From positions 558,001 through 622,000 of the forward strand of contig NEEC01000009.1 in the NCBI GenBank assembly GCA_002189035.1: DNA of 64,000 nucleotides, given 5' to 3'. The stretch comes from Utricularia gibba (taxonomy: Eukaryota; Plantae; Magnoliophyta). Shown piece after piece: positions 3,239 through 60,296 of the stretch. The position numbers and the translations under genes are program-made. Numbering within the stretch: the stretch's first letter is position 1; each line of letters starts with the position of its first letter. The notes beneath the pieces were generated by a model that saw only the letters and a list, made by a program, of their open reading frames with translations, was not told where the DNA came from and searched no databases.

Positions 3239-4194
3239 ATGGCGAGCGGTGGAGGGTATGGGGATGCAACCCAGAAAATAGACTACGTTTTCAAGGTGGT
3301 GTTGCTTGGGGATTCCGCCGTCGGGAAGTCCCAGATTCTGTCGCGGTTCGCCAGAAACGAGTTTAGCTTGGATTCCAAAGCTACGATCGGCGTGGAGTTC
3401 CAAACTCGAATAATGGCCATCCAGAAAAAAAGACTGTTAAAGCCCAGATCTGGGATACTGCTGGCCAAGAAAGGTAATGAGCTTGCCATTTCAATACGTT
3501 TGTCTGTCTCGGAGTTGATTTGGGGATGTGAACTCTCGGATGTTGCGGCTGGAGATGGCGGCATTTCGTGTAATGTCCTGATCTTTGTTTGCTTCAATCT
3601 AGCTATGAACTGTTCTGTGTCTATCATTCTCCATGAATGTCGCTTGCTCACTCACTCACTCACTGCTGTTGATGATTCTTGCTCGTGGGCTTGTTCCATT
3701 GGCGATTTTCCTTTGGATTCGTTGCACACCTCTCAGCACTTTTGCACCATGAACAGATACAGAGCTGTGACGAGCGCGTACTACAGGGGTGCAGTGGGTG
3801 CAATGCTGGTCTACGACATCACCAAACGGCTAACCTTCGACCACATCCCCAGATGGCTTGAAGAGCTGCGTGCCCACGCAGATAACAACGTTGTGATAAT
3901 CCTGATTGGGAACAAGGCAGACTTGGAAGATGAAAGGGTTGTGTCTACTGAAGACGCAAAGGAATTCGCTCAAGCGCAGGGCCTTTTCTTCCTAGAGACC
4001 TCAGCACTGCAGGCTACCAACGTGGAGGAAGCGTTCTTAACCGTGTTGACGGAGATATTCAGCATCGTGAACAAGAAAGCGCTTGAGGTGGTGAGGATCA
4101 GACTGGAAATCCTGCATCTTTGTCCGGGAAGACGATCCTGGTGCCCGGTCCTGGGCAGGTAATCCCCGAAAAGAAGGCGTGCTGTGGCTCATGA
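3239..4194 (+). CDS. RABA4: Rab11/RABA4-type small GTPase, 2 exons (3239-3473, 3757-4194), two apparent frameshifts
   Basis: [22 protein letters not shown]|[26 protein letters not shown] motifs. C-terminus [16 protein letters not shown] appears in a shifted frame. Frameshifts at the A7 run 3425-3431 and near 4086-4090. Confidence 0.92.
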
Positions 4195-21013: not shown

Positions 21014-22943
21014 GTCCTCGTTTGTTAGGTGAGTTTAGCCCTCTAAACCTTTAGGTAAAAAGTATTGTATGTGTTTGTTGGAATGGTTTAGCAAAATACA
21101 AGAGTTTGTATTATCCCGAATTAAACTTGCAACTGGTGGTTTCTCAAAACCCACCGAGAAACCCATCTCACACAAATACAACTTTGTCGATAATACCCTT
21201 CTACTCCATAAGCAAATTCACAACAGTAAATCTATGTATCCGTTCATCCTCTTCAACACAAATCTGTCAGGTTTTTACAGGTACATGGTGTGTGGATTCG
21301 AATTCTAATATTTCGACGAAAACCCATACTTCAGTTTAAGCCAAGAGTTCTTATTTTTTGTTTTGCATATGATGGAGTCGGGTGATTTTTTTCCGAAAAT
21401 TGCAGTAGGATGTGCGTTGCTTATTGAGGTTGTTGCAATGGTTTCAAAGAAGATTATTTTGGCTGCCCTTGCTGCGGCGTATTGCGTTGGTCAGCACCTA
21501 TGTGTTATGCATTTCAGGCACTTCAGAATGCCGCTCTCGATGTATGGAAGACACATTGTAGGCATTGCAACCTTTGTTCACGGTGCCTACAGCATTCGAT
21601 CCTTAGGTACGATCCAAATTGCTCCTAAGGGTCGAGCGTTAATATAAATTTAAAATAAATAAATATACACTGGACTCGAATCACACATAAAGATCGAATG
21701 CTAATAAAAATATTAAAATAAAAAGTATATGTTCGATCCGAATCATACCTAAGGATCGAATGCCACACACATGCACTCAGTTGGCGCATCGATGCCAAGC
21801 ACTGCAAGCGCATATTTGTGGTGCCTAGAAAGATTGGATGCATGATAGATACTGCAACATTTATTTGTGGTGTCTAGAAAGGGACGAGTCCTGTTGTTCT
21901 GCTTTCTATAGGTTACACCTCTTGATAAAGATCTTTGGTTATACAAACTGAAATCAGATATCAGCTACTCATGGCAAACATGTAAAGCGTAATATTATCA
22001 CTCAAAGAAAAATGATCTTCATGATATATAGACATCATATGTGGATATGATCAGAACAACAAAGAAAAACGGTGGTGTAACAAACATTATAGACCTCTCA
22101 CAATCCCATCCACCATAACCTCACCGTTCTGCTCAGAAAGAGTTGTAGCTTTATGGGATTACTCAAGATGACTTTAGTTACTCCTAGACACTGCATTGTA
22201 GTTAATTGCAATGGCATCCCTTTGATGATGTCTGCAGCAGCATTTCGACGTTCCCGTAGGTCATTGGTTTCAACAATAAGAATTTCTCCCAATTGTGCGA
22301 TGGCATCATTTGTTGTAGGCACGTTTGCTTCAACCATTTCTGCAACCAACACATAAGTGCACAACCCATGATAAAACCACGACACACATATAGCTCAATA
22401 TGGCACAAGAAGTATAACAACATTATATGGGTTTCAGGGGCACAATTCACATCCATATTACTCAAAAAACATCACGCACACTAACACCCAGTCGCTCAAT
22501 CCATGTGGTTAAGGTCATTCAAGTGGCAAATGAAATAAACGCCTCAAATTCGAGAAAAAAATACTTGGTGCATCACCCAATACCTAATTTTTCGGTAGAT
22601 CAAACTTGTTCCCAGAGTTACATGAGCCGAAGATCCATGATATTACATCGCAGATCGAGGGTTTCGAATTCCCCAATCTGTGAGTCTCATGTTTCTACAT
22701 GTGGGGTCAAAATAGGATAATAAAATATTTTATTATACATAAATTGTATATTATAGAATTCATTTTTTCTAGTATTGAGAATCTATACATTAACCTTTCT
22801 AATAAACATACAAAATTGATAATCATATATTATTGAACTCTATCTATTAAATATATATTTTATTCTAAACCATTATTTATGGGATACAATAAACTAAAAT
22901 AATCTAAACCCTTTTAATTTAAACTCATCTAACAAACGAGGCC
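21014..22943 (-). mobile_element. Decayed PIF/Harbinger DNA transposon (1.93 kb)
   Basis: 24-bp TIRs (gtcctcgtttgttaggtgagttta at 21014; reverse complement ggcctcgtttgttagatgagttta ending 22943; 2 mismatches) with TAA target duplication at 21011-21013 and 22944-22946. Internal minus-strand remnant IIKGMPLQLTTMQCLGVTKVILSNPIKLQLFLS resembles the PIF Myb-like ORF C-terminus. Confidence 0.8.
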
Positions 22944-24296
22944 TAAGAGTTTTCGGATGAACTGATTCTCTTTGTACCAATTCATAAATATTCTATGAAA
23001 ATTTATTACAGATAAATTATGTATAGTTTATAATAAAAGAAGAATGTAATATAATGGATTCTTGTAAATTACATTTCTTATTTCATTATATTATATTTAA
23101 CATAAAAACGTAAAGTATTTGATTTGTAAAATTAGAATATAAATGTAATTTACAATCTAATTATACTTCTTTAAAGTCTATATTCCAATATTTAAAAATA
23201 ATTTTTACATAAACAATGTACCGTATATATCATTAATATTTTACTTGTTATTTATTTATCTAATAAATTTTACTTTATGACTTAAGAAGATGTTACTAAA
23301 AAAATCGTACATACTATAATCTTAGTGTTTTTTGATTGGTTTATGTAACATCAATTGGTACAAAGATTAGTAAAATAATAAAAGAAGAACGAATTTGGTA
23401 ATTGAGAATTGATTGATTTTCGGATGAAATCAATTTGAATTACTTTAATGTTATTTTATATGGACAGTTGACTGGTTCTAAGACAATAATTTATTTTTGG
23501 CCGAATTTTAGAATTTTTTTTTTTGACTTTTTAACCTCATGTCTAGGATGTTGGACACGTTCATTTTTTGAAAAAAAAAAGAATATTATACATATACTAA
23601 GTGTATGGATATTATGTTGAAATATAATAAATTAATATTATTTAATAGTTTAATATGAAACAATATAATTTATTAATATTTATTCTTTTATGTCCAAAAG
23701 CATTCAAATTAATCTTAATCTTATTTCGACCATCCTATTTATCCCACTGCAATTCACCCAACTCCTATTTTTTACTACTTGTACTAAATTGTTATAATTA
23801 TTTTATGTGTTAGACGTGTTAAAAGAATTAAATAATAAATAAAATTGTTTTTATAATTATGTAAAATTTATTTTTGTAATAATATAATTTAATAAAAATT
23901 GATTATGTAATAATAATAATAATATTATTATTATTATTAAAAATATTATCTGTATATTAAAATATGATACTTTATAATTCAATGTATCCTATGTTCGAAA
24001 CTTGTGTGTAAGGCAACTAACAGCCTTGCCTCATGTAATTAACCGGTTTTTTTCCTTAATCTCGGAGCCAAAACAATAGAATTACAGCCAATTGGTTGGA
24101 AATCCAAAATTCGGAACCCTAAATTGATTTACACGATCGGCATTGTGTTTGATTTTGTGTGGATTCTGATTGCTCAAGGCGTTTCTGGGTTTCCTACTAA
24201 CTCTAGTAACTGTTTAGCTTTGCGAGCGTCGGCTGAATTGTGCTGTCTATAAAGGATTCTTGAAGGTTCTTTCAGGAGGAGTGGACTCCGGTGAAT

Positions 24297-27200
24297 ATGG
24301 AGCAGTCCAAAGGGCGGACTTGGGAGAAGAGTCCCCGTGTGGAAAGGGTTTATCGTGTTTCTACAGTTCCTTCTTTTCGCGGGCCTTCGCGTCAACGGTA
24401 CCAGACCAGGTTTTCGAGTTGTCATCAGTATCGTGATCGCCCACCTGATCAGAGATTACCCTGTTTCAACTATGCTGTACAGATGATATCGGTTTCTAGG
24501 AAAGATGTGGAATTGAAGGATATGGATGTCGTGCTTGGAAGGCTTGATTTCCAGCCAGTGGATTGGAATTTGCAACGTTGTAATAATATTTCAGCCACGC
24601 TTTATTACCAGCGATGGAGCGACGCGCTTGAGACTGTCGTTCAGCTGTGGAATATGGTCTTCGACGGTTCTGTTGTTGGATTTCTGCCGCATTTTTTTAG
24701 CAAAGTGAATTTGCCCTCCGAAAGGGAGGAAACAATTTATCGGTTGAGAACTGTGTTTTTGGATAACTTGAAGCTGTTGAGAGGAGTTTTCCTGGAGAAG
24801 TGGATGAATGAGATTCAGAGGGCAGCTGAAGAAATCAGGAAGATTTCTACTTCATTAACAGGACCACAGAACTTACGCGTCTGGGATGAACTTTTGAAGA
24901 GAAAGAAAAGTTTGCAGGAAGAAAGAGATTTGATCTTGAATAGGGTTCAGGAGTTTTTGACTGGGATTGATTGCATTGAGAATTATTTGAAGGACGAAAA
25001 AAACCATGAAGATGGGGATGTCCCAGTTTTCCAGTTTTGGGATGGGGAGATTGACTGGAGGAGAATCTACAATTTAATAATGAGGGAGCGCCGAAGACTT
25101 GAAGATGGACTACCAATTTTCGGCCGTAGGCGGGACATTATGAAGCAAATACACTGCCAACAAGTAATTTCATGCAAAGCTCTTCCTTCTATTAATATAG
25201 TTATTACTTTTGGGCTAAATGGCGTAGGTGAATCTTTTTTCACTGATGTTATAATAGCATCGGCACATGATTAATGTGGTTGATTTGGACTAGGAGATAA
25301 GTATCACTCTCAGTTGTGTCATCCATAATGATCACGTTTGCCCCCTATGGTTTCTGAAAGGCAGTCTGAGAGTCTTTTGTAAAGGAAGATCCTGATGCTA
25401 TAGAAATATCATTTCATCAGGTTCCTTGGTTACACAAGATTAATTTTGTTTTAAAATGAACTGCATGATGAGGATTTGTTGGCGTTTTTCATATGAGTAG
25501 TTCCATTGTTTTGTTCAGATTAGATTGCGAATATGAGGTTTTCTTTTTTGTTCCCTAAAATTCTGAACATTCTTTCTATTTCCATTTTCTTAGTTGTCTC
25601 TTGTGAATGAATAATGTTTGCATTGAATTTAATCCTTTCATTTCAATGACATCTAGGTAATCTTCAGGATTGGTGTCAGTAATCTTTTCGTAATTTTCAG
25701 AATTCATAGAACTTAAATTGTGACTTCACTGATGATGGTCATCTATAGGTTTTAGTACTAATTGGCGAGACGGGGTCTGGAAAGAGCACACAGCTGGTAC
25801 AGTTTCTTGCGGATTCGGGAAATTACCATGAGTCCATTGTGTGTACACAACCACGTAAGATTGGTGCCATTTCTTTGGCAGAAAGGGTCAATGATGAATC
25901 CCGTGGCTGTTATGAAGATACTCTGGCCACATGCTATCCTACATATTCATCTGTTCAGACGTTTAAGAGCAAAGTGGCATTTTTGACCGATAACTGCTTA
26001 CTTAGGCATTACATGAATGACGACAGACTTTCAAAAATATCGTGCATTGTTGTTGACGAGGCCCATGAAAGGAGCTTACACACGGATTTGCTTTTGGCTC
26101 TAATCAAGAAGTTACTCTGTGTGAGGCCCTGCCTTAGGCTTATTATCATGTCTGCCACAGCAGATGCTGGCCAATTTGCAGAATACTTTTTTGGTTGTAC
26201 AATTGTGCGTGTACCTGGGAGATGCTATCCTGTTGAAATAAAATATGTGCCTTCTGAATCTGAAGGATTTTCACCCTCCAATGTATCACAATACGTACTT
26301 GATGTTTTGAAAATGGTAAATGAAATTGACAAAACGGATATAGATGGGACCATTCTTGCATTCTTGACATCCCAAATGGAAGTAGAATGGGCTTGTGAGA
26401 ATTTTCATTCACAGTCTGCTGTAATATTGCCTTTACATGGAAAGCTATCTTCTGCTGATCTAAATCGTGTGTTTCTAACATATCCAGGTAAGAGAATTTA
26501 CTTTTTCCCATCAAAACGTTTCATTGTTGGTCTGTTTTTGAATTTCTGGCATGTGCAGGTAAGAGATTAATTATATTTGCCACTAATGTTGCTGAGACAT
26601 CATTAACAATTCCTGGTGTCAAGTACGTGGTTGATTCTGGGATGATGATTGAGAGTAGATTCGAGCCTTCTAGTGGAATGAACGTTCTAAAGGTATGCCG
26701 CATAAGCCAGAGTGCTGCAAATCAACGTGCAGGCCGTGCAGGCAGGACAGAACCTGGGACATGCTATAGACTCTACAGAGAAAGTGATTTCCTGGAAATG
26801 AGGCTCCATCAAGAGCCTCAAATTCGAAAGGTGCATCTTGGTATAGCAATTCTTAAAATGCTTGCGCTAGGGATTGAGAATATCGAGAAGTTTGATTTTG
26901 TAGATGCACCGAGTGAATGTTCTGTGAGCATGGCTGTTACAAATTTGATTCAGTTAGGAGCCATTCTGCTGAAAGGTGGAAGCTATGAACTAACCGCGCA
27001 GGGATGGGAAATGGTTAAATTGGGTGTTGAACCTCGCTTAGCTAAAATAATTCTAAAATCTCATGACTACCATTTGGGTAGAGAGGGCCTTGTTCTTGCT
27101 GCAGTAATGGCTAATTCAAGTAGCATATTCTGTAGAGTCGGTAGGCTGGAAGACAAGTTGAAAGCAGATTGCCTTAAGGTGCAATTTTGCCATCCTGATG

Positions 27201-30200
27201 GTGATCTTTTCACCCTGCTTGCTGTTTACAAAGAGTGGGAGTCTCTTCCTGATCAAATGAAAAATAGCTGGTGTTGGCAAAATAGCATCAATGCCAAGTC
27301 CTTGAAGAGATGCCGGGAGGTTGTGTTGGAGCTGGAGACATGCCTCCAAAGTGAACTTAATATTATTGTGCCAACCTACTGGAGCTGGAACCCTCAAAAA
27401 GTTACTGAAAATGATAAAAAACTGAAAGATGCAATACTTTCATCCCTTCCTGAAAATGTGGCAATGTACTCTGGGTTTGATCATCTTGGGTATGAGATAG
27501 CATTGACAAGAAAGTATGTGAAATTGCATCCTTCATGTTCTCTTTTCAGTTTTGGTAATAGACCAGCTTGGGTTGCTTTTGGGGAAGTACTTTCTGCATC
27601 GAGTGAATATCTTGTCTGTGTTACTGCTTGTGAGTATGAATCTTTGCTGATGCTTCCTTCTGCTTCACAATATTGTATCATGGAAAGCCAACGGTTGCAA
27701 AAGAGAATTTTTTCAGGTTTTGGGAGTGTTCTGCTGAAGAAGTTTTGTGGCAAGTTTAATGGCAATTTGCAACGCCTTGTTTCAAGTGTTCGGTCGTCAT
27801 GCAATGACAACAAAATATATGTTGAAGTTAATGTTGATCAGAATGATGTGCATCTCTTAGCATCATCTCAGCACATGGAGAGAGCATACGACATTGTATT
27901 TGGAGCACTGGAATATGAAAAGAAGCTCATGGAAAATGAATGCATGATAAGATCTTTATATGACGTAGGGCCTACTGCAGTTGCCCCAGTTGCTCTATTT
28001 GGAGCAGGTGCTGAGATTAAAAATCTGGAACTTGATGGTAGATATTTGACTGTTGATATATTCCACTCCAACATCAACGCACTTGATGACAAGCAGCTCA
28101 TGGGTTTACTTGAGCGGCAAGCCTCAGGTTTTATTTGTAAAACCAGCAAGTGTTTTGGCATCGCTCCTGATGGTGAGGTGGACAAATGGGGAAATGTCAC
28201 ATTTCTTGACCCTGATGCTGCAAAGAGGGCTTCTGAAATAAAGGACTTTGAACTTTGTGGTGGATTGTTAAAGGTAGTTCCTTCCAGAAGCAAGGGAGCT
28301 GGTGATAGCAGAATGTTGAGGGTCCCTCAACTTAAAGCTAGCATTGAATGGCCTCGTAGATATAGCAAAGGGGTTGCTTTTGTGACATGCCATCCTGCGG
28401 ATGTTGATTCTCTGATAGAGGTTGTTTCCAATCGACAGATTGATGGTAGTTTTGTTTGGTGTGACAGAAGTAAAACCAGTGAAAACTCTGTTGTTATTTC
28501 TCGGCTTAGTAAGGAACTTTCAGAAGATGATATATCTAGGGAGTTAGGTGCTGTCACTGAAATACCTATCCTGTCTGTGAATCTCATGAGAGCAGACGTT
28601 GTTGATTGCCCTCCCCTTAAGGTTCTTCATGAGGCCATTTTAAGAGAGATTTCTCCTTTTTTTCGGGGACTTAACCCACAATCCAACTGCGTTCATGTTG
28701 AGGTCATTGAACCCAAAGAAATGGATTCCTTCATGAAGGCGACAATCACTTTCGATGGAGATTTACACTTGGCTGCAGCTAGTGCCCTTGAGCAGATTGA
28801 GGGAAAAACATTACCTGGACTGAAGTCATGGCAAAAAATAAGATGCAGACGATGGTTTCGTAGCTCTGTATCATGTTCTGCAGCAGTATATGATGCTATT
28901 AGCAAACAACTGCAGTCGATGATTGAAAGGATACGGCAGCAAAAGGGTACTTCTGAATCTACTACTTCTTACATGCCATGTTTTGCTCCTTGTCATGTTT
29001 TTGTGTTGTTAGCTTGCAATATATGGAATTCATCAAGAACATCTTTCAGTTGTTGAATTGTTGCCAGAAGTTATGTTTGTGCCCTGATGTTGCGGAATCC
29101 TCATTGGCAGGTGTCACATGCACTCTACTGGGGAACAGAATCGGTTTTTTTAGAGTGGATATATCTGCTCGTGCAACGAGAACAGTTGCAGAGGCGAGGA
29201 GACCTCTGGAAAAGCTTATGAGAGGGAGGATCTTGCAACACCCTGATCTTAATTCCCAAGTGCTTCAGATTCTTTTTTCACGGGATGGTGCCACGCTGTT
29301 GAAAATTACTCAACGGGAGACAGGGGCATACATCATATTTGAAAGGCAAAGCATGATTGTGAGAATATTCGGTTCTCCTGAAAAGGTACAAAAAGCAGAG
29401 GAAATGCTTGCCATAGGCCTTCTTGCACTGCATGAGAGCAAGCAACTTGAGGTCAAACTTCGCAACAGGTTTTTGCCTCTTGACATGATGAAGAGGGTAG
29501 TTCAGAAGTATGGACCAGACCTTCGCAGTCTTAAAGATGCGTTTCCTGGTGTTGAATTCTCTCTGAACGTGAAACGCCATTGTATTTACATGTCATGTGG
29601 CAAGGAGCTGAAGCAGAAGGTCGAGCGACTGATTTTCGACCTCGCCGACACATCCGAACACCAGAGCTCCTGCAAGGACTACGCCCCAGCCTGCCCCATC
29701 TGTATGTGTGAAATAAGCGATGCTTACAGGCTCGACGGTTGCTGCCATGACTTCTGCCGCTCCTGCTTGGTCGATCAGTTGGAGTTTGCAACTCGAAACT
29801 CCGACAGTTTTCCAGTCCGGTGTTCCAAGTATGGCTGCGGATACCCCATCCTCCTTGCCGACTTGAGAGCCTTATTACCAGATGAGCACAAACTGGACGA
29901 GCTTTTCCGGTCATCTCTGATAGCCCACGTCGCCGGCAGCGGAGGGAAGTACGCATTCTGCCCATCCCCGACTGCCCCTCCGTCTACCGCGTCGTGGACC
30001 CCGGCGAGCCGGCCTCCCCCTTTCTGTGCGGCGCCTGCTACTCGGAGACGTGCGCGAGGTGCCACAGTGAGTACCATCCCTTCGTGTCCTGCGAGAAGTA
30101 CAGCGAGTTCAAGGAGGACCCGGATCTGTCACTGAAAGAGTGGCGCAAGGGGAAGGACAACGTGAAGACCTGCCCGTGCTGCCGCTCCACCGTGGAGAAG

Positions 30201-39150: not shown

Positions 39151-39223
39151 TTACACACATTCGTTGCATTCTAACGCATTCTGATTTTTCTGATTGGAAA
39201 ATATTCCTCTCCCGGAGCTGGAG

Positions 39224-39852
39224 ATGAAGGCGAAGATTCTCTTGTTTGTCGTTGGCTTAGCTCTCGTGGCTTCCGCGGTGGCTGCCGTGGAAGCTTCTGG
39301 AAGCGAGAAGAAGAAGGGAGTTGCCCAGGAGGGAAAATCTGGTTTGCTGAGTTTCATTACATTCGGGATTTTTTTTTCTTTTTCTTTTCTGGTTGCATTC
39401 GAAATTTGCGGACTGCAGGAAGTGAGATGAAGCCTGATGGTTACGACGGCGGGAAGGGTGGCTACGATGGCGGGAAGGGTGGAGGTTATGGGAAAGGCGG
39501 AGGCTACGACGGCGGGAAAGGCGGAGGCTACGACGGCGGGAAAGGCGGAGGCTACGACGGCGGGAAAGGCGGTGGTTACGACGGTGGGAAAGGCGGTGGT
39601 TGTGGCGGGAAAGGCCCATGCACTGAGAGCAAAGAAGAGATTAAAGAAGGTGAGAATTGACAGTCGAATTTCGAGGTCACTACTCTGTGTGTACATATAT
39701 ATACCTGAGCACTGAGGATACACGCAGGCAAAGATCATTACGGTGGCGGCGGGTACGGCCATGGCGGTGGCCACGGTCATGGGGGCGGTCACGGCGGCTA
39801 CGGCGGCGGAGGGTATGGGCACGGCGGGAAAGGAGGGGGCCATGGGAAGTGA
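39224..39852 (+). CDS. Secreted glycine-rich protein (class II GRP-like), 3 exons (39224-39341, 39419-39649, 39728-39852)
   Basis: Hydrophobic signal peptide MKAKILLFVVGLALVASAVAA, exon 2 with GGGYDGGK repeats, exon 3 Gly/His/Tyr-rich; both introns phase 1. An alternative frame EPKVGESKN* ends at 39880, so a terminal frameshift is possible. Confidence 0.85.
39445..39600 (+). repeat. Coding minisatellite, ~24-bp unit (GGCGGAGGCTACGACGGCGGGAAA), about 6 imperfect copies
   Basis: Directly visible tandem units encoding GGGYDGGK. Confidence 0.9.
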
Positions 39853-41114
39853 ACCCAAAGTTGGCGAGTCTAAGAACTGATGCAACAAGGCGGCGGTGGT
39901 GGAGAATCCTTGATGATGTATTGAAATAAAAGCGCCGAGAATAATTTCTAAGTTGACTAATCTCATCTTAGCCTATGCTTTTATGTGCCACGTCACCAAA
40001 TTCCCCCCCCCCCCATCAGTCAACTCTACCCCCCAAAAGCCCCTTTAATCATAATAAAATATTATAAAATAATACATATTTTTTATATTAGAAAATCCAA
40101 AAAATATTCTAATTATATATTATAAAATATTTATATATATAACATGTGTGTGTGTGTTTACATTACTTTTGTCCAAATTTTGATAAATAAGTGGGCACTT
40201 TTTTTAAACGTGTGTAAAATTTTTATTTCAAATAATCACAACTCATTTATATGGGTCATCACAAATAAATATTTATTTCATATTTAAATATTTTAAATCA
40301 TATTAATTTTTTACATAGCTACAAATTAGTTTAGTTTGGAATTTAACCAAAATCGATAAAATAATTGTGCATAATAGTTTTGGAACCATAACCAACATTT
40401 GTTGCTCTCATAATACTGGGTCAAAGAAGACAATATAATAGTTAGAATGGTTTATTATATTGCGGATGAATAACATTAATTAGACAGGTTTCTGGAAATA
40501 ATAAATTAATTATTCGCATAAAAATTCATTATTTTAAATGTTTGTATAAAAATATAAGAAATAAAAAGATGTGACTATATGACAATTCTCTACTATATTT
40601 TTATCTAGATTTTGCATTTAACATATACAACATACGTTATTTTTGGTACACACAAAAATCGGGATGGTCATTCTTCAAATAACCCGACAATTCATGCATG
40701 AGAATGATAATTGCACAAGTTTTGGTGATATTGTACCAAAACAACATTACTTGTTTCACCCAATGTATAGACTTGTAATATTACTTAATGGTCCACTAAT
40801 TTCATAATAATATTACTTAATATTCCACTAATGTAGAATCATTTCTGTTAATCCATATTTATGTACATAATTCTCACATTGGGTAACACAAGTGAAGTAC
40901 GAGTATCTTCGATTGATACGTTTATTATTATGATTTTTACAATTTGATTCTTAGGTTGTGTAATTCAAGTGGTTGTTTTAAAAATCTCAATTCAGCCACA
41001 TTATTATAAAGTTGGATTAAATTTGAATCATTTAAAAATAAAAAAATGAATCACATTTCAATCATGTTTCAATTATAATTAAATCAGGATTTAATTATGA
41101 TTTAATGTATAGTT

Positions 41115-45658: not shown

Positions 45659-47460
45659 ATGGCACGAGAAAGGATCAAGATCAAGAGGATCGAAAACCTG
45701 AGCGCCCGACAAGTGACTTTTTCCAAGAGAAGAAAAGGGCTCATCAAGAAGGCCAAAGAGCTCTCAGTTCTCTGCGACGCCGAAGTTGCTCTCATAGTCT
45801 TCTCCTCCACTGGGAAGCTCTTCGAGTTCTCTAGCTCCAGGTGGGTTCATTTGTTTTTCCAACACTAAGTGTGTGCTGTTTTTTTATCTTCATTTTTTAG
45901 AAATTATAGCATCAGATCCTTGGTATAATTAGGGTTCGTCATCTGGAGACCTCTCCTTCTTACATTACCTTGTTTTTCTCAAAGAATATCCCGAGATCTA
46001 GGAATCTGGTTGATGCCCAGCGAGTTCTAAGCACCCATCTGCAAATAGCCATCCATCTACTTAGAAAACAACATTTCTAGCAATCGTAACTGGTAGAAAC
46101 TAGGGGTGTAGAGAAACAAGGTATTGTTTTCAAGCGTAGCAACAGGAATGAAACATAAGTTGTGTTGTAAATCTTGCATCGACTTTCTGCACGTTTGTTT
46201 CAAGTCAAATTGTCAAGTGAACTTTAGAGCTGAAGATTCAACATCTGTGGTAAGGGTGTAACCAAACTCATGGTGCTTCTCTCTGTTGAATCTTAGATAC
46301 TCCATTGCTATTTTGATCTGTGTTCTATTACCATGTACGGCTTTGTTATTACGCATTGTCTGTTGGAATGAGATGAAGCTCAAGTCCACTCTCTTGTTAA
46401 TGTTGTGAAGCATGGATGGTATACTGGAAAGGTATAACTTGCAGTCGAAAAGCCACGAGCTGCAGGCACTTCCGTCTCTCGACCTTCAGGTTTGAAAACT
46501 ACGATTCAGTAGCATTGCAATGTGAGTGGCATACATTTTACACTAGCTACTGATGATCTTGTGGTGATGGCAGCTTGTCATGAGCAGCGATTTCCCCACA
46601 TTAAGCAAACAAGTGGCTGAGAAGACCCGCCTGCTGAGGTAGTGTGCTCGACTTCGCAAACCCTTCTAATTTCTCATGTTGACAACATGGCTATGTCGAC
46701 ACAAGGCGGATGAGAGGGGAGGATCTCCTGGAAATGAGCATACAGGAGTTGCAATCTTTGGAGAAGTCACTAGGAGAAGGATTGGATCGCGTTATCGCAA
46801 AAAAGGTCTGTGCAGCAAATCCATGAATGAAGCTCTTGGGAGAATCAAGGTTGTCTCTTCTGATCCTGGTGTTTTGGCTTTTGACAGAATGAGAGGATTG
46901 AGAAAGAGACAAGTGAGTTACAAGAGAAGGTTAGCACCCTTGATCCCTTTGTTTAAGCAAGACAAGCACTCAATACAAGCTTAAAAAAAGTTTCCCAGAA
47001 TTAGATCTACCTGGTTCATGGCTCACTTTCCATCCCTATGTGCAGATAATCCAGCTTGCAAGAGAGAATGATTTGCTAAGGCAAGAGGTATGCACATCTT
47101 TTGGTTCAAGACAACATCTGTCCACAGGGCATCAACTAACCAGATACGTTAACACCACAGTGCCATTCACTTTTTTCCCCTTTCTTGTCCACAACATTCC
47201 TGTTCAGATGGAGGACATGTCGACCAGTAGCCTGAAAATGGGGACTACATGTTCCGAAACCATAGCTTACGACGAAGTCCCGACGTCGTCCTCGTTTTCC
47301 AAGAGTTCCTCAGACACCTCCCTTACACTAGGGTGACTGATTCCTTCACTCCGTGAAGAAAAGAATCCAAGCCCTCCTCTTCTGACCTCGCTGCTGCTCC
47401 TTCTTTGGTTGCAGGTTGGGTTTAGATGAGACCAGCCGGGCTAGTGGCGGCTCACGCTGA
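45659..47460 (+). CDS. SVP/StMADS11-clade MIKC MADS-box gene A1, 8 exons, intact
   Basis: [40 protein letters not shown]; K-box [20 protein letters not shown]; C-terminal [24 protein letters not shown]; all introns GT-AG and in frame. Confidence 0.93.
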
Positions 47461-49072
47461 TGGATCCGTACCCTGCAGCTGACTCCTTGCTCATGTTGTG
47501 CCCTTTTCTTACATTGGAACTTCCATGTTTGCTGCTTCTAATCAGTGGCTTGCCGTTCCACCTTTAAAATTTAGTGCGTGATTTCCGTTGTGAAAATTAA
47601 AAGCTAATGATATATTTTATTTAAATTATTTATATTTAGATAAATACGTATTATACATTAAAATCATACTTAATACATAGATTTTATAAATATGTGTTTA
47701 AAGTGAATAAAAAAACTAAATCTTGTATGACTACAAAAATTCATGCCGCATTGGAGGTTTGAAAATATGGTTGAATAGGTTACGTAAATATTTCAGAAAT
47801 TATGTGTATTCTTCCATAAATAACAAAAAAAATAGAATAGGAAATATGAAAAATTTCATTTCTGAAATTATATCATTATTAATACATGTGTATTTTTAAA
47901 AATAAACGCATATCAAATATAATCTGTGTTGTATAGACTTAGGGTATCCACATTATGCATGGTCCTCTTTTTTCATTTTTTATTTTTTCTTATTCCACAC
48001 AATAAATTTGCATTGTTGTAGGAATATTAATATTTTTTTTAAAATAGTTTTGCTTTTATACAAATATTTTATATTATCAAATACAAATAATTTTTACTAT
48101 AAATTAAATTGATAAGCAATTCTTATTTTTTTAATAAAATAATAATATTAATTTACATTTTATTATATATACTTAAAAAAATTACATTTTTTTGAGAAAC
48201 AGAATCAAATGGATACGATGAGAATTTGGAGTTCCTATGCTACCAAATGTTTTTGTTCCTTTGGGTTGAATTTATGATTTTAAAACCATGGCTTAGTATT
48301 CAGTTTTTTTTTTAATATTATTGACCAATTGATTATGAAGAGTTAAGTCAATATAGGAGCATTGTTATCTAAAATTTCTTTGTATGATATTGTTATTTTT
48401 GAATGTACAATTCTCATAATTTTACGTTATCTTCTTCTAAAAAAAAAAAAGAGCTCATACAAAATCAAAAAATATATTTTTGTATAAATTGTCTCTCTAT
48501 GTATTAGTAAACAATATGATATTCGACTAAATCATTATATAATTACTTGGACTCATTAGCAATTCTTGACCATATTTATTGACCAATTTATTAAAAGAAA
48601 CTCAAAATGTACTTTTCTGTCAAATTTAAAATGAAAGTTTAAATTTCATAATAAAATTCGAAAAATGGTGACAGGGGCCCAAAGGCAGCCAAATCATTTA
48701 GTGGGAATGACACGGTGGGTGGGGGTGTCATTTGGATTTTTTTGAAAAATACTCACTATGTGTGTGTTAAAAATATCCATCCTGTGTTCAAATTTTTGTA
48801 CGTGGTGTGTGAGAGATAAATCCTTTAATACCATTGATTGCTTATACCATTGATTGCTTGCTTTGCTTGCTCATGGCGTTTGTCAGGTGAATTTTTTTTT
48901 GATTCTCGCGTGTTCTCTCTCCGGCGGCTCCTATTTTTAGAAACCCACATGGCATCCCCCCTTCCCCCTCAACCCCGGTAGGGCGGTACCTTGCACTTGG
49001 TGGACCTGCTTCTCTCTTCGGCCCTCAATCTTCATCTGCTCTCAATAATAGCTTCTTGTCCGAGAGCCAAAA

Positions 49073-50126
49073 ATGGCGAGGGAGAAGATCAAGATCAGGC
49101 GAATCGATAACTTGAGCGCCCGCCAAGTAACTTTTTCCAAGAGGAGAAAAGGGCTCATCAAGAAAGCCAAGGAGCTTTCGATTCTCTGCGATGCTGATGT
49201 TGGTCTCATCATCTTCTCCTCTACTGGGAAGCTCTCCGAATACTCCAGCTCCAGGTTCCGTACCTCTGTTATCTATTTATTTATTGGTTCTGCCTCAGGC
49301 CCTCAAGGTCTTCTGTTTCTGTCAAAGAAGTTGGACATCGGATCCTTGGGAGAAAAAAGGGTCCTTCTGATGTTTTTGTATCGTGATCTGGAGATATTTC
49401 ATTGTTTTGGCCCTCGATCTTTAGAGATCTGAGAGAGCTGTCCATGTTCCTTAAGTTCCGTACAACTCGGAAACTAAAGACCAAATGGATAAAGAAGGAA
49501 TATACCTTTTTAGTTGCTGCCTGTGCCTGTGGGCTTGTTGCTTTTTTGGTAATTAAAAAAATCATATCTTGATCTGTTCTCTCTAAAATGGTTTTCTTGG
49601 AGCAGTTGAGAGTAAGCACAGTTGAGGCTCTTGATTGGCCTTCTGTAAAACTTTTGTTGTGTTTCAACAAGCTGATAGAACATCTTCTATTGCACTGTTT
49701 TCTTTTTCTCAATCCCTACTTTTCTTCCAATCGCGTTGTTAATGTGACTCTACAATGGCACCACTGCTAATTTGGACTCCTTTGTTGAAATCATGAAGCA
49801 TGGATGATCTTCTTCAAGGGTACAAATTCCTGAAAATCTGTTGCAGCCATGGCTTGATCTTGAGGTAAGCAAGCACCATCTGGCATTCTCTTCTTATTGG
49901 GATTGTGATACGAAGCTGTCACTGAGATTCATATCCTATCCTTCTTGAATCTTCTTGAACGTGCAACAATGGCGGTGGCAGCTCGTTGTGGGCAGCGACT
50001 TCCCCACATTAAGCAAAGAAGTGGCTGGGGAGCCAGAAAAGCGCGACTACAAGCTGCAAGATCATATCCCGGGATGAATTCCGGTCATCGGAATCCACCA
50101 GCGACGCCGCGATTGCCCAACTGGGG
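49073..50126 (+). pseudogene. Truncated chimeric SVP-like locus B1 (MADS intact; exon 2 frameshift; exon 3 fused to psi-0 exon 7)
   Basis: Exon 1 49073-49254 intact. Exon 2 (49799-49864) is 66 nt versus 79 nt in B2. Shifted frame stops at 50010-50012 (92 aa). Junction at 50027/50028. Confidence 0.85.
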
Positions 50127-50671
50127 ACTTTCAAACCACTTTCAGTTCAATTTTTTCCCAAGCAAAATCATTAACCGAAACCTCTAAAACTTACAAGAAG
50201 CGATCATCCTTGAAGATGAAGCTGTTTACAGCGATCAAGATCTTGTTCTTTTACAAGATTACTCTTATTCTAACGATGGTTTGATCTTGTGCTTCCTTTT
50301 TTTTTCTTTTTGTAATGAAAGACATTCCACTGAACTAGGAAGATCTTGGTCCAAAGGGTGTAAAGGCGATCGAACATGTCCGTACAAAAAGATCCGATGA
50401 AAAAACATATATTAATTTGGTAACTTAGATAGGGATTCGTGGTTTGTGGAGAGGCGAATTCTATGGACGTGAGACCGATCCGATGGACAGACAGCTTGCC
50501 TGGGGCCTGGGCCACTGACAAAATTCATGACTGGATTTCTTCTCCTTCTCATCTCTTCTATTTCTATCTCCACGGAAAGATTCGCTGAGCACTATTTTTA
50601 GAAAGCCCTTTGCTTTTCAGAGGTCAATTCTCAACTTCCCTTGTGTTGATCGAGCTCTGCACTACCCAAAA

Positions 50672-52488
50672 ATGGCACGAGAAAGAATCAAGATCAAGAG
50701 GATCGAAAATCTGAGCGCCCGACAAGTGACTTTTTCCAAGAGGAGAAAAGGGCTCATCAAGAAGGCCAAGGAGCTCTCAGTTCTCTGCGACGCCCAAGTT
50801 GCTCTCATAGTCTTCTCCTCCACTGGGAAGCTCTTCGAGTTCTCTAGCTCCAGGTGGGTTCATTTGTTTTTCCAACACTAAGTGTGTGCTGTTTTTTTAT
50901 CTTCATTTTTGAGAAATTATAGCATCAGATCCTTGGTATAATTAGGGTTCGTCATCTGAAGACCTCTCCTTCTTACATTACCTTGTTTTTCTCAAAGAAT
51001 ATCCCCGAGATCTAGGAATCTGGTTGATGCCCAGTGAGTTCTAAGCACCCACCTGCAAATAGGCATCCATCTACTTAGAAAACAAGATTTCTAGCAATCG
51101 TCACTGTTAGAAACTAGGGGTGTAGAGAAATATGGTGCTGTTTTCAAACGCAGCGACTGGAATGAAACGTAAGTTGTGTTGTAAATCTGGCATCGACTTT
51201 CTGCTCGTTTGTTTCAAGTCAAATTGTCAAGTGAACTTTAGAGCTGAAGATTCAACATCTGTGGTAAGTGTCTAATCAAACCCATGGTGCTTCTCTGTGT
51301 TGCATCTTAGATACTCCATTGCTATTGTGATCTGTGTTCTATTACCGTGTACGGCTTTGTTATTACGTATTCTCTGTTGGAATGAGATGAAGCTGAAATC
51401 AATTCTCCTGTTAATGTTGTGAAGCATGGATGGTATACTGGAAAGGTATAACTTGCAGTCGAAAAGCCAAGAGCTGCAGGCACTTCCGTCTCTCGACCTT
51501 CAGGTCTGAAAGCTACGATTCAGTAGCATTGCAATGTGAGTGTCATACATTTCGAACTAGCTACTGATGATCTTGTGGTGATGGCAGCTTGTTATGAGCA
51601 GCGATTTCCCCACATTAAGCAAACAAGTGGCTGAGAAGACCCGCCTACTTAGGTATCGTGCTCTCGTTTGATTTCTCAAACCCTTCTACTTCTCATGTTG
51701 ACAACATGGCTATGTCAACACAAGGCGGATGAGAGGGGAGGATCTCCTGGAAATGGGCATACAGGAGTTGCAGTCTTTGGAGAAGTCGCTAGGAGAAGGA
51801 TTGGATCGCGTTACCGCAAAAAAGGTCTGTGCAGCAAATCCATGAATGAAGCTCTAAGAGAATCATGGTTGTCTCTTCTGATCCTGGTATTTTGGCTTTT
51901 GACAGAATAAGAGGATTGAGAAAGAGACAAGTGAGTTACAAGAGAAGGTTAGGACCCTTGATCCCTTTGTTTAAGCACAAAAAAAGGTTCCCAGAATTCT
52001 ACCTGGTTCATGTCTCCCTTTCCATCCCTATGTGCAGATAATCCAGGTCGCGAGAGAGAATGATTTGCTAAGGCAAGAGGTATATACATGGTGCCATAAT
52101 AATGCTTATTCTGGGATCTTTTGGTTCAAGAAAAAATCTGTCACACAGGGCATCAGCTAACCAGATACATGAACACCACCGTGCCATTCACTTTTTTCCC
52201 CTTTCTTGCACACAACATTCCTGTTCAGATGGAGGACATGTCGACCAGCAGCCTGAAAATGGGGACTACATGTTCCGAAACCATAGCTTACGACGAAGTC
52301 CCGACGTCGTCCTCGTTTTCCAAGAGTTCCTCGGACACCTCCCTTACACTGGCGTGACTGATTCCTTCATCCTTCACTCCGTGAAGAAAAGAATCCAAGC
52401 CCTCCAATTCTGACCTCGCTGCTGCTCCGTATTTGGTTGCAGGTTGGATTTAGACGAGACCAGCCGGGCTAGTGGCGGCTCACGCTGA
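50672..52488 (+). CDS. SVP-like MADS-box gene A2, 8 exons, intact
   Basis: Paralog of A1; ends [24 protein letters not shown]. Confidence 0.93.
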
Positions 52489-53887
52489 TGGATGCGTAGC
52501 CGGGAGCCATTCTGGAGCTGTCTCCTTGCTCATGTTGTGCCCTTCTGTTACCTTGGAACATCCATCTTTGATGCTTCTAATCAGTGTCTTGCCGTTCCAC
52601 CTTTAAAATTTAGTGGGTGATTTCCGTTGTGAAGTATGTGAAAATTAAAAGCTAATGATATATTTTATTTAACTTATTTATATTTAGAAAAATACGTATT
52701 ATACGTTAAAATTATATTTAGTACATAGATTTTATAAATATATCTTATGAATTGATAGATGTGTTTAAAATAAATAAAAAAAACTAAAAAAAAATTCGAG
52801 ATTTGAAATTATGGTTGAATAGGTTATGTATTTCAAAAATTATGCGTCTTCTTCCATAATAACAAAACAAATAGAATAAGAATTTTGAAAAATATCATTT
52901 CTGAAATTATATAACTATTAATACATGTATATTTGTAAAAATAAACGCATCTATCAAATATAATCTGTGTTGTGTAGACTTAGGGTATCCACATTATGCA
53001 TGGTCCTCTTCTTTCGTTTTTTATTTTTTCTTATTCCACATAATCAATTTGCATTGTTGTAGGAATATTAATATATTTTTTAAAATATTTTTGCTTTTAT
53101 AAAAATTAAAACACAAATAATATTTATTATAAAATTAAATTTATAAGCTATTCTTATTTTAATAAAATGCGAATATATAATTTACATTTTATTATATATA
53201 TTTATAAAAAAATACATTTTTCGTGAAACAGAATCATATGGATATGATGAGAATTTAGAGTATGTATGCTACCAAATGTTTTTATTCCTTTGGGTTGAAT
53301 TTATGATTTCAAAACCATGGCTTAGTATTCAATTTTCTTTATTTACCAATTGATTACCAAGAGTTAAGTCGATATGGGAACATTGTGGTACATTTCACAC
53401 ATTGTGGCGCTCGTTAGCAATTATTCCACACCATTTCTTGACCATATTTATTGACCCATTTATTAAAAAAAAACTCAAAAATGGACTTTTGTACTCCATC
53501 CATATATACACACATATATATATGTATATATTTTTAATTTGTAGTAATTTAAAATGGAAGTTTAAATTTCATAATAGAATTCGAAAAATGGTGACAGGGG
53601 CCCAAAGGCAACCGAATCGTTTAGTGGTAATGACACGGTGGGGGTGTCTTTTTTATACCATTGATTGCTTGCTTTGCTTGTTCATGGCGTCTGTCTGTCA
53701 GGGTGAATTGTCTTTTGATTCTCGCGTGTTCTCTCTCCGGCGGCTCCTATTTTTAGAAACCCACATGGCATCCCACCTTCCCCCTCAACCCCGGTAGGGC
53801 GGTACCTTTCACTTGGTGGACCTGCTTCTCCCTTCGGCCCTCATCTCCATCTGCTCTCAATAATAGCTTCTTGTCCGAGAGCCAAAA

Positions 53888-55776
53888 ATGGCGAGGGAGA
53901 AGATCAAGATCAGGCGAATCGATAACTTGAGCGCCCGCCAAGTAACTTTTTCCAAGAGAAGAAAAGGGCTCATCAAGAAAGCCAAGGAGCTTTCGATTCT
54001 CTGCGATGCTGATGTTGGTCTCATCATCTTCTCCTCTACTGGGAAGCTCTCCGAATACTCCAGCACCAGGTTCCGTACCTCTGTTATCTATTTATTTAGA
54101 GGTTCTGCCTCAAGTCTTCTGTTTCTGTCAAAGAAGTTGGACATCGGATCCTTGGGAGAAAAAAGGGTCCTTCTGATGTTTTTGTATCGTGATCTGGAGA
54201 TATTTCATTGTTTTGGCCCTCGATCTTTAGAGATCTGAGAGAGCTGTCCATGTTCCTTAAGATCCGTACAACTCGGAATCTAAAGACCAGATAGATAAGG
54301 AAGGAATATACCTTTTTAGTTGCCGTCTGTGCCTGTGGGTTTGTTGCTTTTTTGGTAATTAAAAAAATCATATCTTGATCTGTTCTCTCTAAAATGGTTT
54401 TCTTGAAGCACTTGAGAGTAAGCACAGTTGCGGCTCTTGATTGGCCTTCTGTAAAACTCTTGTTGTGTTTCAACAAGCTGATGGAACATCTTCTGTAAAA
54501 CTCAATCCCTACTTTTCTTCCAATCGTGTTGTTGGTGTGACTCTACAATGGAAAAGATGATGAAGATGCAAACTCCCTTCTCATCCCACCACTTCTAATT
54601 TGGACTATTTTGTTGAAATCATGAAGCATGGATGATCTTCTTCAAAGGTACAACTTGCAGACCAAGAGTCCCGAAAATCTGTTGCAGCCATGGCTTGATC
54701 TTGAGGTAAGCAAGCCCCATCTGGCATTCTCTTCTTCTTGGGATTGTGATACGAAACTGTCACTAAGATTCATATCCTATCCTTCTTGAATGGGCAACAA
54801 TGGCGGCGGCAGCTCGTTGTGGGCAGCGACTTCCCCACATTAAGCAAAGAAGTGGCTGAGAAAACACATCAACTCAGGTCCTACACCCAAATTCTGCTAG
54901 TTAGTTATTTACCTCATAATTTCATTAAAGATGAGATTTTGACACACGAATGAAATGTAAAGACGACTGAGAGGGGAGAATCTCCAAGGACTTAGCATAG
55001 AAGAGCTGCAGGCGATGGAGAAGACTCTCGGGATCGGATTGGACCGTGTTATAGCGAAGAAGGTATGCTCATCTCACAAACATCGATGAAACCCCTAACA
55101 GAAAAACCAGTTCTTTTGTTATTCAAATTAACACGCCTATTGCTATTCATAGACTGAGAAGATCAAGAAGGAGACCGATGAACTTCAGAAGAAGGTCACG
55201 ATGAAGAGACTAAGCATCTTCGTTTTTAGCATTTTCTTTTCATTTCATGTCTAGTGAAAGAAAGAAAAGAGGGCCCTTTACCAGCACTAGGGAGACATGT
55301 ATGTCTAGGGTTACCCCAGAGCCGTGTGTGCGGTGCGGAAGCGTGTGTTATTCTCTTGAGTTTTACGTGCTTCACTTCTCATTCCATAAATCCTGAGTAT
55401 GTTGCAGGTACTCCGACTCACCGAAGAGAATGATCAACTGAGACGCGAGGTTCGTTTGGACAAGTTTACCAGCCTGTGTGATCTCCTGCTAAGACAACGT
55501 TGTTGTGTTAGGTGTTGGACTCCAAGGGTAGCCAGAAAACGGCTGATGCAAGTTCTGAAACCATGATGTACGACAAAGCCCCCTCCTCGGAATCTCCAAG
55601 CAGTTCCACTCAGCACCTTCAAGATTCCAAGAGCTCATCCGACACCTCTCTTACACTAGGGTGAGCGTTTATTTTTTCTGCTTTTTTTTTTTTTGGAAGA
55701 ACACAGATCTCCTAGGGGTTGTTGACAAATTCGTCTTCCTTCTTCTTCCCCGCAAGATAGGCTGCATTTCGTTTGA
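53888..55776 (+). CDS. SVP-like MADS-box gene B2, 8 exons, intact
   Basis: [26 protein letters not shown]; [29 protein letters not shown]; ends [14 protein letters not shown]. Confidence 0.92.
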
Positions 55777-56185
55777 AACTTCAAACCAAAGGATCTACCT
55801 GGTCGTGTGACAGAAATTGTAAAAGCAACGTTTGTGTTCAATCTCATGTTCCCCCCTGGATGTAGCCAGTTATCATCAGCAATGGTGGCCTCCGTGCTTG
55901 AAAATGTTCATGTCTGCAAAGTCGCTACTTGTGAATTGGGTGAATTGTAGTTGCATTGGAAGTGAATGGTGGTGGAGAGTGTAACTTTTGTAATGACAAC
56001 AACCCTTTCTCAAACTTCACATCCCAACACTGCTAAAACTTCGAAGGATATTCTGCTGAACAGATCTAAATTGTTTCAGAGAAAAAAAGGCAACATTTCA
56101 AAATCGGGCTACTTGTGATTCATATTGGTGGTAGCTGAGAAGAAGAAGAAACACGGTATGGGGGTGGTCCCGGCCTGGTGCTCGG

Positions 56186-56190
<5 letters not shown>

Positions 56191-56217
<27 letters not shown>
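56191..56217. repeat. (CT)13 microsatellite immediately upstream of the psi-C CArG-like site
   Basis: Direct reading. Confidence 0.95.
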
Positions 56218-56350: not shown

Positions 56351-57601
56351 ATGGCAAGGGAAAATGATGAAGATCAGGAAAACTGAAACTCTGAGCGCTC
56401 GCCAGAGAAGAAAAAGGGCTTATTATCAAGAAGGCTAAAGAGCTCCCAGTTCTCTGCCGCGCCCAAGTTGCTCCCCAACAGGGAAGCAGGCTCCTCCTCC
56501 CTTTTGCTAGCCCCAGGTTCCTTCCTTAATCTTTCAGCATTTCACTGTATGCAAGAACACAGTATCGACAAGAAGGGATGGACCAAGGTGGAAATACTCA
56601 GGTTTTGCTGAGATTTTGGTTGTGGAAGGAAGTAAGAAACCAGAACATGATTTTGCCTTGACCTGCTCTCCTTTTTTGTTCTGGTTTCTTACTTCCTTCC
56701 ACAACCAAAATCTCAGCAAAACCTGAGAGTATCTGCATCGTGGCCTATCTCTTCTTGTCAGGTATGTTTGTTTTTTGTTTGCCGGAGTGAAAATCGGTGT
56801 CTCAGATCCATGAGAAATAGGGTTTGGGCTGGAGATTTTATTTCAAGAGGAGATGGATATATTGGAGATCTACCAACAACCTGCCCAATTCTCTTCTTTG
56901 AGAAAATGCTGATGAACTAACTTGGCCAGTATAGCCTCCTTTGTTTTTTATTTTCTTACCAAAAAAATTGTATTTTATTTTTTGAATACAAAAGAGTTAG
57001 ATAGATTTCAAAATTTAAGTGATATTTAACTTATATAATTTTTAAAACATTCAATGAATTAATTATGTTTTCATATCAACTCAAAACATATTTGTTTTGT
57101 GCATAGATACTCTTTAGTAATTCATAAATTGTATTTTCTTTCCTAGCAATTCCAATGCTAAATATTCAAATTACTTGAAAATGTTTGTGTCATGACTCAA
57201 AATGCGGTATTTTTATAATTCCTTTGATTTTCGATGACATTCATTTTGTAATAGCCCCTGAGCTTCTATTCATAACCTCCTTTGACATCACGATCAAGAA
57301 GTTTGATCATGTTTGTAATGTGATACATTTAGTTTGCTAACTTGATTTGGACATGCCTTTTTTTTTTTTATCTAAGATGACTAGAAGAATTGGTAGGATT
57401 TAGCTTTGGAGAAGTCAACAGAATGGTAGCATGAAAATTTCCAAGTTGCTACACATTACAAACTCATGCTACTTGCCATAGTTCATTAACTCCATTTAGG
57501 CTTCTGTTGTTTATGTGATGAAGCATGGATGCTACACTCAAAAGGTATAGTTCGCAATCTGAAAATTGTGAGACAATGGCGTAGCCATGGCTCCACCTCC
57601 A
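56351..57601 (+). pseudogene. SVP-like MADS-box pseudogene C (psi-C)
   Basis: ATGGCAAGGGAA followed by frameshifts and deletions in the MADS exon (ends 56516). Exon 2 remnant SMDATLKRYSSQSENCETMA*PWLHLQ has a stop and has lost its donor (GG). No later exons recognised. Confidence 0.85.
56567..56759 (+). ncRNA. Foldback hairpin, candidate young MIRNA/siRNA precursor
   Basis: Perfect 51-bp inverted repeat (56597-56647 with 56677-56727), 29-nt loop, plus a ~30-bp imperfect outer stem. The structure is certain; expression and strand are not shown. Confidence 0.5.
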
Positions 57602-58873: not shown

Positions 58874-60296
58874 ATGGCAAGGGAGAAGATAAAGATCAAG
58901 CGAATCGATAACTTGAGTGCCCGACAAGTGACTTTTTCGAAGAGGAGAAAAGGGCTCATCAAGAAGGCAAGCGAGCTTTCGGTTCTCTGTGATGCACAAG
59001 TTGCCCTCATAATCTTCTCCTCAACGGGGAAACTCTTCGATTTCTCCAGCTCCAGGTTCCCTTTTATGTATCCCTCTCTGTGACGAAGATTTGCCAACAC
59101 TATACCTTTAGGAGGAGGGTTTTTTTCTTTCTTCTATGTGATCATAATCTGGAGGTATTCCTTGACTTTTTGCTTTTCTACAAAGCCCCAGTCTGGGATC
59201 TGGGTGTGTAGTCAACGTTCCTTGCGTCCGTACAGCCATTTTTAAGCGCTTTCCAAGTAGAAGCCACAGAGAAGCAGAGAGACCTGTCTTTGTTGCATAT
59301 ACTTATTTATTTTTCCTGTGAGGAAAACAGGGTTTTCTTGCAAGTATTGTTGCGCCTTTATTGCAACGCTGTCGTTTGGATTTAGCACAGTTTGCAAAAT
59401 CACAATCATCGCCACTGAAAATCCTAGCAATATTTATCATTTTTGCAATCCTTTAACTTAGGGGGGAAAACATAAACATTTCGTCCAACCATCGAAGTTT
59501 AACCCTTTTTCCTTGTTCATTCCAATATGTTCTGTATGCCCCTACACTACATGAATATTTTTTGTTCATGATGTTGAAGCTGATATGCTCCTTGGTTTCA
59601 TTGTTGTGAAGCATGGATGAAATACTTAAAAGATATCATCTGCATTGCAAGAACTCTAATAACCCGGCGCAGCCTTTACTTGACCTTGAGGTACTTACTA
59701 CCCTCTCATGTGACACAAGCTTTGTCAATGGTGTTTAACAAGCTTGCGGTGGTCTCACAGGTGGTTGTCGGAAGCCACACGCCGACGTTAACCAAAGAAG
59801 TAATGGAGAGAACTCGGCAACTCAGGTAGTCTATCTGCACTCGTTGTTTATTACAAGCTCGTTTTGATGCTCATTTCATGATGATATGGTGATGTTCTGA
59901 GAAGGCGTTTGAGAGTGGAGGATCTCCTGGGACTGAGTGTCGAAGATCTGCACTCCATGGAGAAGTCACTCGGAGCTGGATTGAACCGTATCATATCAAA
60001 GAAGGTAGCCACCGTTTGAATGAGATCAAGCACTTGCAATAGGAAGAAAAAAACACTCTAATTCTAATCCTTGAATTTCGATAGAACCAGAAGATCGAGC
60101 AACGGACTGAGGAACTACAAGAGAAGGTTTGTTTCATGGTACCGAGTATACGAATCTTTTCTACATGACATGTTTCTCCATCCATATGCAGATACTGCAG
60201 CTTACAAAGGGCAATGAACTACTTAAACAAGAGGAATCCCAACTCCGTCTCTGCGGTATCCCCGGCCAAAATCCCTGGCTTCCTTTTACAGTTTGA
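58874..60296 (+). CDS. SVP-like MADS-box gene D: intact M-I-K domains, C-terminal domain lost
   Basis: Exons 1-6 in frame. Exon 6 donor reads GA not GT (60234-60235), giving readthrough [20 protein letters not shown] (stop 60294-60296). Exon 7 remnant ADRNRKHLLP* also has a stop. Confidence 0.8.

Follow-up and report, generated by a model that had tools for sequence, protein, structure and literature searches.

Whole hairpins can arise in one template-switch event, and hairpins of this origin are enriched in introns (Monttinen, Frilander and Loytynoja 2023, PMC10710096). Switching between the arms of an imperfect inverted repeat is also described as homogenizing and expanding the arms (PMC13100816). 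The hairpin analysed here, in intron 1 of a dead MADS gene of Utricularia gibba that we call psi-C, has in common with the former group a perfect stem attributable to a single step, sharp boundaries and an intronic position. As in the template-switched inverted repeats of PMC13100816, an imperfect, older repeat lies beside its perfect part. The published template-switch cases were inferred by ancestral reconstruction in primates or yeast, whereas the psi-C hairpin is judged from a single sequence.

Arabidopsis MIR161 and MIR163 are young MIRNA loci that came from the inverted duplication of a founder gene. In the models of MIRNA birth, long near-perfect stems enter the DCL2/3/4 pathways and give heterogeneous siRNAs (PMC10004981). 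Founder-gene MIRNA or hpRNA loci (Model 1, PMC10004981) and psi-C are both long, near-perfect fold-backs for which siRNAs made via DCL2/3/4 are the expected initial products, but no founder or target of the psi-C arms was found in the searches of the window and of proteins. MITE-derived hairpins and MIR genes (Model 3, PMC10004981) are, as is the psi-C hairpin, short, self-complementary from end to end and situated in or near a gene. Unlike them, the psi-C hairpin has no target-site duplication (TSD), no second copy in the window and termini of no recognized superfamily. The miR402 locus of Arabidopsis (Knop et al. 2016, PMC5389571) resembles psi-C in that a 5' splice site lies close to a hairpin carried by the first intron or first exon of a host gene. 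This situation is different from that of psi-C in two respects: miR402 is a proven miRNA, whereas the psi-C hairpin has a pseudogene as host and is only a candidate; and psi-C has both a native upstream donor and a cryptic downstream donor, with opposite predicted effects.

Setting and structure of the psi-C hairpin

The window, which is the whole 64-kb stretch of DNA that was analysed, contains a tandem array of SVP-type MADS genes, and a tandem SVP expansion has been reported for U. gibba (PMC6251477). MADS-box open frames at 45659, 49073, 50672, 53888 and 58874 read MARE(R/K)IKI.... In an alignment with four paralogues, the MADS exon of psi-C carries five indels, which bear out the preliminary description of the host as dead. 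Exon 1 of psi-C ends in a donor of the paralogue type (CCAG/GTTCC at 56516/56517; the same type is found at 49251, 54066 and 59052, in two classes of paralogue), so that the hairpin begins 50 nt into intron 1, as had been proposed. The features of the locus are as follows.

56184-56217, + strand: CT dinucleotide run upstream of psi-C, read from the sequence; putative part of a promoter
56352-56516, + strand: decayed MADS-box exon 1 of psi-C, ending at CCAG/GTTCC (alignment to four paralogues)
56567-56596, + strand: left outer arm, with a perfect 9-bp terminus (56567-56575) and then the mismatch patch (gapped alignment)
56597-56647, + strand: left arm of the perfect 51-bp inverted repeat (complementarity; unique in the window)
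56648-56676, + strand: spacer (loop) of 29 nt (folding and repeat search; no second copy in the window)
56677-56727, + strand: right arm of the perfect 51-bp inverted repeat (complementarity)
56728-56759, + strand: right outer arm, with 2 extra nt (bulge) in a GAGAG run where the perfect arm joins (alignment)
56759-56767, + strand: consensus-like 5' splice-site motif CAG/GTATGT directly after the stem, read from the sequence; putative site
57502-57565, + strand: remnant of psi-C exon 2, about 78-79% identical to 46390-46451 and 51403-51465 (BLAST)

An acceptor-like TTTAG/G lies just upstream of the exon-2 remnant. Intron 1 of psi-C aligned with that of every paralogue no better than shuffled sequence did, and the insertion of the hairpin is therefore not mappable by comparison with the paralogues. 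For the same reason, nothing can be read from the earlier remark that the hairpin is absent from the other introns of the array. The paralogue classes cannot be aligned with one another in intron 1 either (45841-46389, 49255-50000, 59056-59800 and 56517-57500, all with shuffle-level scores). Since the MADS exons of the array are 70-86% identical, intron turnover in the array is very fast.

Three further regions of the window were characterized. A DEAH11-like helicase/RING gene (24291-30135, + strand; Pfam RBD_DEAH11, RRM_DEAH11, KH_DEAH11, OB_NTP_bind and zf-C3HC4) is broken up into four or more successive + strand ORFs, with an overlap between two of them at 28978-29056; introns or frameshifts could account for this. 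An ORF of 307 aa (3239-4162) has a Ras/Rab domain that is interrupted, with residues 19-63 and 172-273 as its two parts, which suggests an in-frame intron that the ORF finder read through. An ATG-initiated ORF of 271 aa (39151-39966, - strand) matched no Pfam family, and of 8000 candidates that share words with it not one scored at E up to 0.001; it is an orphan gene or else no gene at all.

The inverted-repeat search of the 64 kb recovered the perfect arms (56597-56647 and 56677-56727; 51 nt each, 100% complementary and 29 nt apart) and an outer stem (56567-56599 and 56727-56759) of 79% complementarity. In a gapped alignment, the left arm (81 nt) differed from the reverse complement of the right (83 nt) by seven substitutions and one 2-nt indel, all of which sit outside the perfect core. 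The whole inverted repeat thus spans 193 bp (56567-56759). The perfect hairpin with its 29-nt loop, the outer stem with seven differences and a 2-nt bulge, and the CAG/GTATGT immediately 3' of the stem are therefore all as the preliminary description had them. No other inverted repeat in the 64 kb is of this strength; the rest are short, AT-rich and 70-95% complementary. A weaker inverted repeat at 21592-21763 has 22-nt arms that are 95% complementary and separated by 128 nt; part of the arm recurs once more between them (AAGATCGAATGC at about 21690), and no TSD is obvious by eye. A small fold-back and a MITE-like relic are both conceivable readings of it.

RNA folding, a check that had been suggested at the outset, gave one unbranched stem-loop for 56550-56780. 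Both strands are far more stable than shuffled sequence: the + strand RNA folds at -134.9 kcal/mol (z = -17.8; none of 200 shuffles equalled it) and the - strand RNA at -122 kcal/mol (z = -17.5; no shuffle was as stable). Three of the mismatches pair as G:U on the + transcript, as stated earlier, and two do so on the - transcript, so that the strands show no asymmetry and the implied bias towards the plus strand disappears.

Age and origin of the inverted repeat

The two parts of the stem differ strongly in divergence, with 0 differences in the 51 bp of the inner part versus 7 in the 30 bp of the outer part (Fisher p = 6e-4), and the boundary between perfect and imperfect pairing is statistically real. 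All seven mismatches are confined to one 18-nt span (P = 2e-4 by simulation), and the patch that they form is bounded by nine perfect terminal bp on one side and by 51 perfect bp on the other. Because five of the seven are transitions and two are transversions, the patch is homologous sequence decayed by point mutation and not unrelated filler. No template for the patch was found within about 2 kb, and extension of the repeat into the flanks was not significant (local p = 0.45, anchored p = 0.03). The clustering of the mismatches indicates template switching, conversion between the arms or a single clustered mutation suffered by a young repeat, and the hairpin is very young or recently homogenized.

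The preliminary description had offered selection, arm-to-arm conversion or a very recent inversion as causes of the boundary. Selection does not explain the lack of any difference over 51 bp, because G:U changes that are neutral to pairing would be tolerated; the perfection of the core points instead to lack of time or to conversion. Conversion and very recent inversion were thus the right class of cause.

We put at roughly 0.58 the probability that this 193-bp repeat, single-copy in the window and lodged in the intron of a dead SVP-like MADS gene, was made by local template switching and is, as regards RNA function, undemonstrated raw material. During replication or break repair, a nascent strand would fold back, copy its own sequence and then return to its template. 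Such fold-back or snap-back synthesis, or arm-to-arm conversion, would produce, in one step, an inverted copy that is perfect and sharply bounded. A template switch is expected to leave adjacent sequence copied perfectly in inverted orientation, with abrupt limits, and in psi-C the arms are identical at 51 of 51 positions and the identity stops abruptly at the 2-nt indel; together with the short unique spacer, these abrupt ends make up a template-switching signature. Two versions of the event fit equally well. In version (a), a recent switch, with its return at the pre-existing homology, would have extended or re-homogenized in the inward direction an older, decayed repeat that is now the outer stem; in version (b), a young repeat of about 83 bp would later have taken one clustered mutation in the 18-nt patch of one arm. 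An arm of 51 bp seems long for a template-switch event, and the splice donor exactly at the base of the stem is a coincidence that template switching leaves unexplained. In short, the hairpin is a real, young and locally generated inverted repeat, an example of a kind that is already known.

Other origins were weighed against this one. It is unlikely that the repeat came into the psi-C intron as a 193-bp, almost wholly palindromic copy of a MITE or fold-back transposon, although its size (MITEs measure 100-800 bp), its self-complementarity over nearly the full length and its perfect 9-bp termini, which correspond to terminal inverted repeats, all fit such an element, and MITEs rank among the main published origins of hairpins and young MIR genes in plants (PMC10004981). 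No TSD was found at any of the standard lengths; only a 4-mer, GTAT, occurs near both ends, at offsets of 1 and 2 nt. The repeat is also single-copy in the 64 kb: the arm does not recur in the window with up to 3 mismatches, and BLAST at word size 7 within the window returned the partner arm only. The lack of a TSD had been noted before, and the numerous dispersed copies with TSDs that were to mark a MITE are not seen at the scale of the window. Two 24-mers gave 0 matches in a metagenome collection, which does not represent plant genomes. To our knowledge, the termini of the hairpin (GACAAGAAG...) are unlike Stowaway, Tourist, hAT, Mutator or CACTA ends, and we count this too against a MITE.

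The founder-gene model, by which part of some distant gene, perhaps an exon and the adjoining splice donor, was duplicated in inverted orientation and would give siRNAs targeting that gene, seems very unlikely here. In its favor, the right arm ends at a good exon/intron-like junction followed by a U-rich stretch, and several frames through the arms are open. However, the donor lies outside the duplicated unit, since the repeat ends 2 nt short of the GT, and the window holds no DNA match and the tested frames no protein match. Neither the word-size-7 BLAST nor a scan with 21-mers revealed a source or target inside the window, apart from a low-complexity site at 14622 that is the sole 21-mer match outside the hairpin; in the array genes, no target-like site for 21-mers of either strand was found with up to 3 mismatches. 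Likewise, no coding origin was detected: an exhaustive HMMER search of 1.84 billion representative proteins with the 102-aa frame that is open across the hairpin gave 0 hits, the 71-aa frame of the opposite strand yielded no candidate in a word search, and Pfam returned nothing meaningful for four frames (a single line, DUF6858, at E = 0.016, was below the cut-off). Together these protein searches cover four of the six frames of the arms and are blind to a non-coding source. Last, library artefacts can yield perfect palindromes, but an assembly or sequencing artefact in the form of a chimeric fold-back read is extremely improbable given the short arms, the unique 29-nt spacer, and the diverged outer repeat with ordinary unique flanks. 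Fold-back read artefacts are usually of kilobase scale and without a decayed outer stem, which also speaks against this.

Small-RNA potential of the hairpin

If transcription of psi-C, or read-through, covered the hairpin, the product would be a near-perfect RNA duplex of about 85 bp, which would probably be diced by DCL2/3/4-type enzymes into mixed siRNAs and not into one DCL1 miRNA duplex. The fold-back required of a plant MIRNA by the criteria of Axtell and Meyers 2018 is reportedly no longer than 300 nt and free of secondary stems where the duplex lies, and the 193-nt unbranched stem-loop of psi-C lies within these bounds. The same criteria are said to demand one precise miRNA/miRNA-star duplex with 2-nt 3' overhangs, seen in small-RNA reads. 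A duplex of this precise kind, envisaged in the preliminary description as one outcome, runs contrary to the prediction of mixed siRNAs from a stem this long and perfect (PMC10004981). The hairpin is thus best regarded, on its sequence, as raw material for a small-RNA locus, a candidate and not a demonstrated one.

In Rfam searches of 14 kb and then, more permissively, of 331 nt, no family exceeded its threshold. The best match was MIR8643, at 71 bits against a gathering score of 135. Matches below threshold to unrelated miRNA families occurred on both strands and so reflect generic matching of a long hairpin and not membership of a described miRNA family. A relic of MIR156 in the outer arm was also considered and rejected: 34 of 638 tiles of the window score as well, and the mir-156 model gave no hit at E up to 10.

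Because psi-C retains a donor of the paralogue type upstream, the hairpin is probably intronic if it is transcribed. For miR402, the only intronic case examined, an active 5' splice site of the hosting intron lowers the yield of the intronic miRNA and its inactivation raises the yield, while stimulation by a downstream 5' splice site was demonstrated for hairpins in first exons (PMC5389571). The earlier proposal that the donor aids processing therefore keeps its consensus-like site but is opposed by the lowered yield of intronic miR402. As the effect depends on position and the hairpin is probably intronic, the net influence of the splice sites on its output is unpredictable.

The promoter proposed earlier, a (CT)13 run with a CArG box, is only partly recovered. 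The CT run is present at 56184-56217, but no canonical CC(A/T)6GG box occurs upstream of psi-C, and that upstream region has no BLAST similarity to the promoters of the paralogues. The only canonical CArG boxes of the array (CCAAAAATGG) are at 49067-49076, 50666-50675 and 53882-53891, where they overlap the ATG of three members; the homologous site in psi-C, ACAAACATGG, is non-canonical.

A functioning young small-RNA locus (hpRNA or proto-MIRNA), driven by the psi-C promoter and aided in processing by the downstream 5' splice site, would agree with the very stable + strand fold, the CT run upstream, and the CAG/GTATGT at the stem base with the exon-2 acceptor downstream, as well as with the higher yield that PMC5389571 reports for first-exon hairpins with a downstream 5' splice site. 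We nevertheless consider such a locus decidedly unlikely. The upstream region has no canonical CArG box and the promoter is unlike those of the paralogues; the retained native donor type makes the hairpin probably intronic, a position in which the active 5' splice site of the host intron lowered the miR402 yield. In addition, the G:U pairs have no strand asymmetry, the genes of the window contain no complementary site, and the 51-bp perfection is a sign of youth and not of selection. The hairpin itself is probably neutral. There is also a small chance, which we rate as slight, that the dead member of the SVP array has been recycled as the host of a new hairpin RNA gene, in which the surviving promoter and splice signals would lead to siRNAs or an emerging miRNA.

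As it stands, the main value of the psi-C hairpin is as a marker of fold-back template switching, and it cautions against taking perfect pairing for a sign of selection, when it is one of youth. Should small RNAs from it be demonstrated, the locus would illustrate cleanly the beginnings of a plant small-RNA gene, from a hairpin formed by a one-step mutation together with the borrowed promoter and splice signals of a pseudogene. And if psi-C has indeed been recycled, it would represent the earliest stage of MIRNA birth, with the template switch and the borrowed transcription unit both identifiable, and a new silencing signal would be tied to the flowering-time expression pattern of the array.
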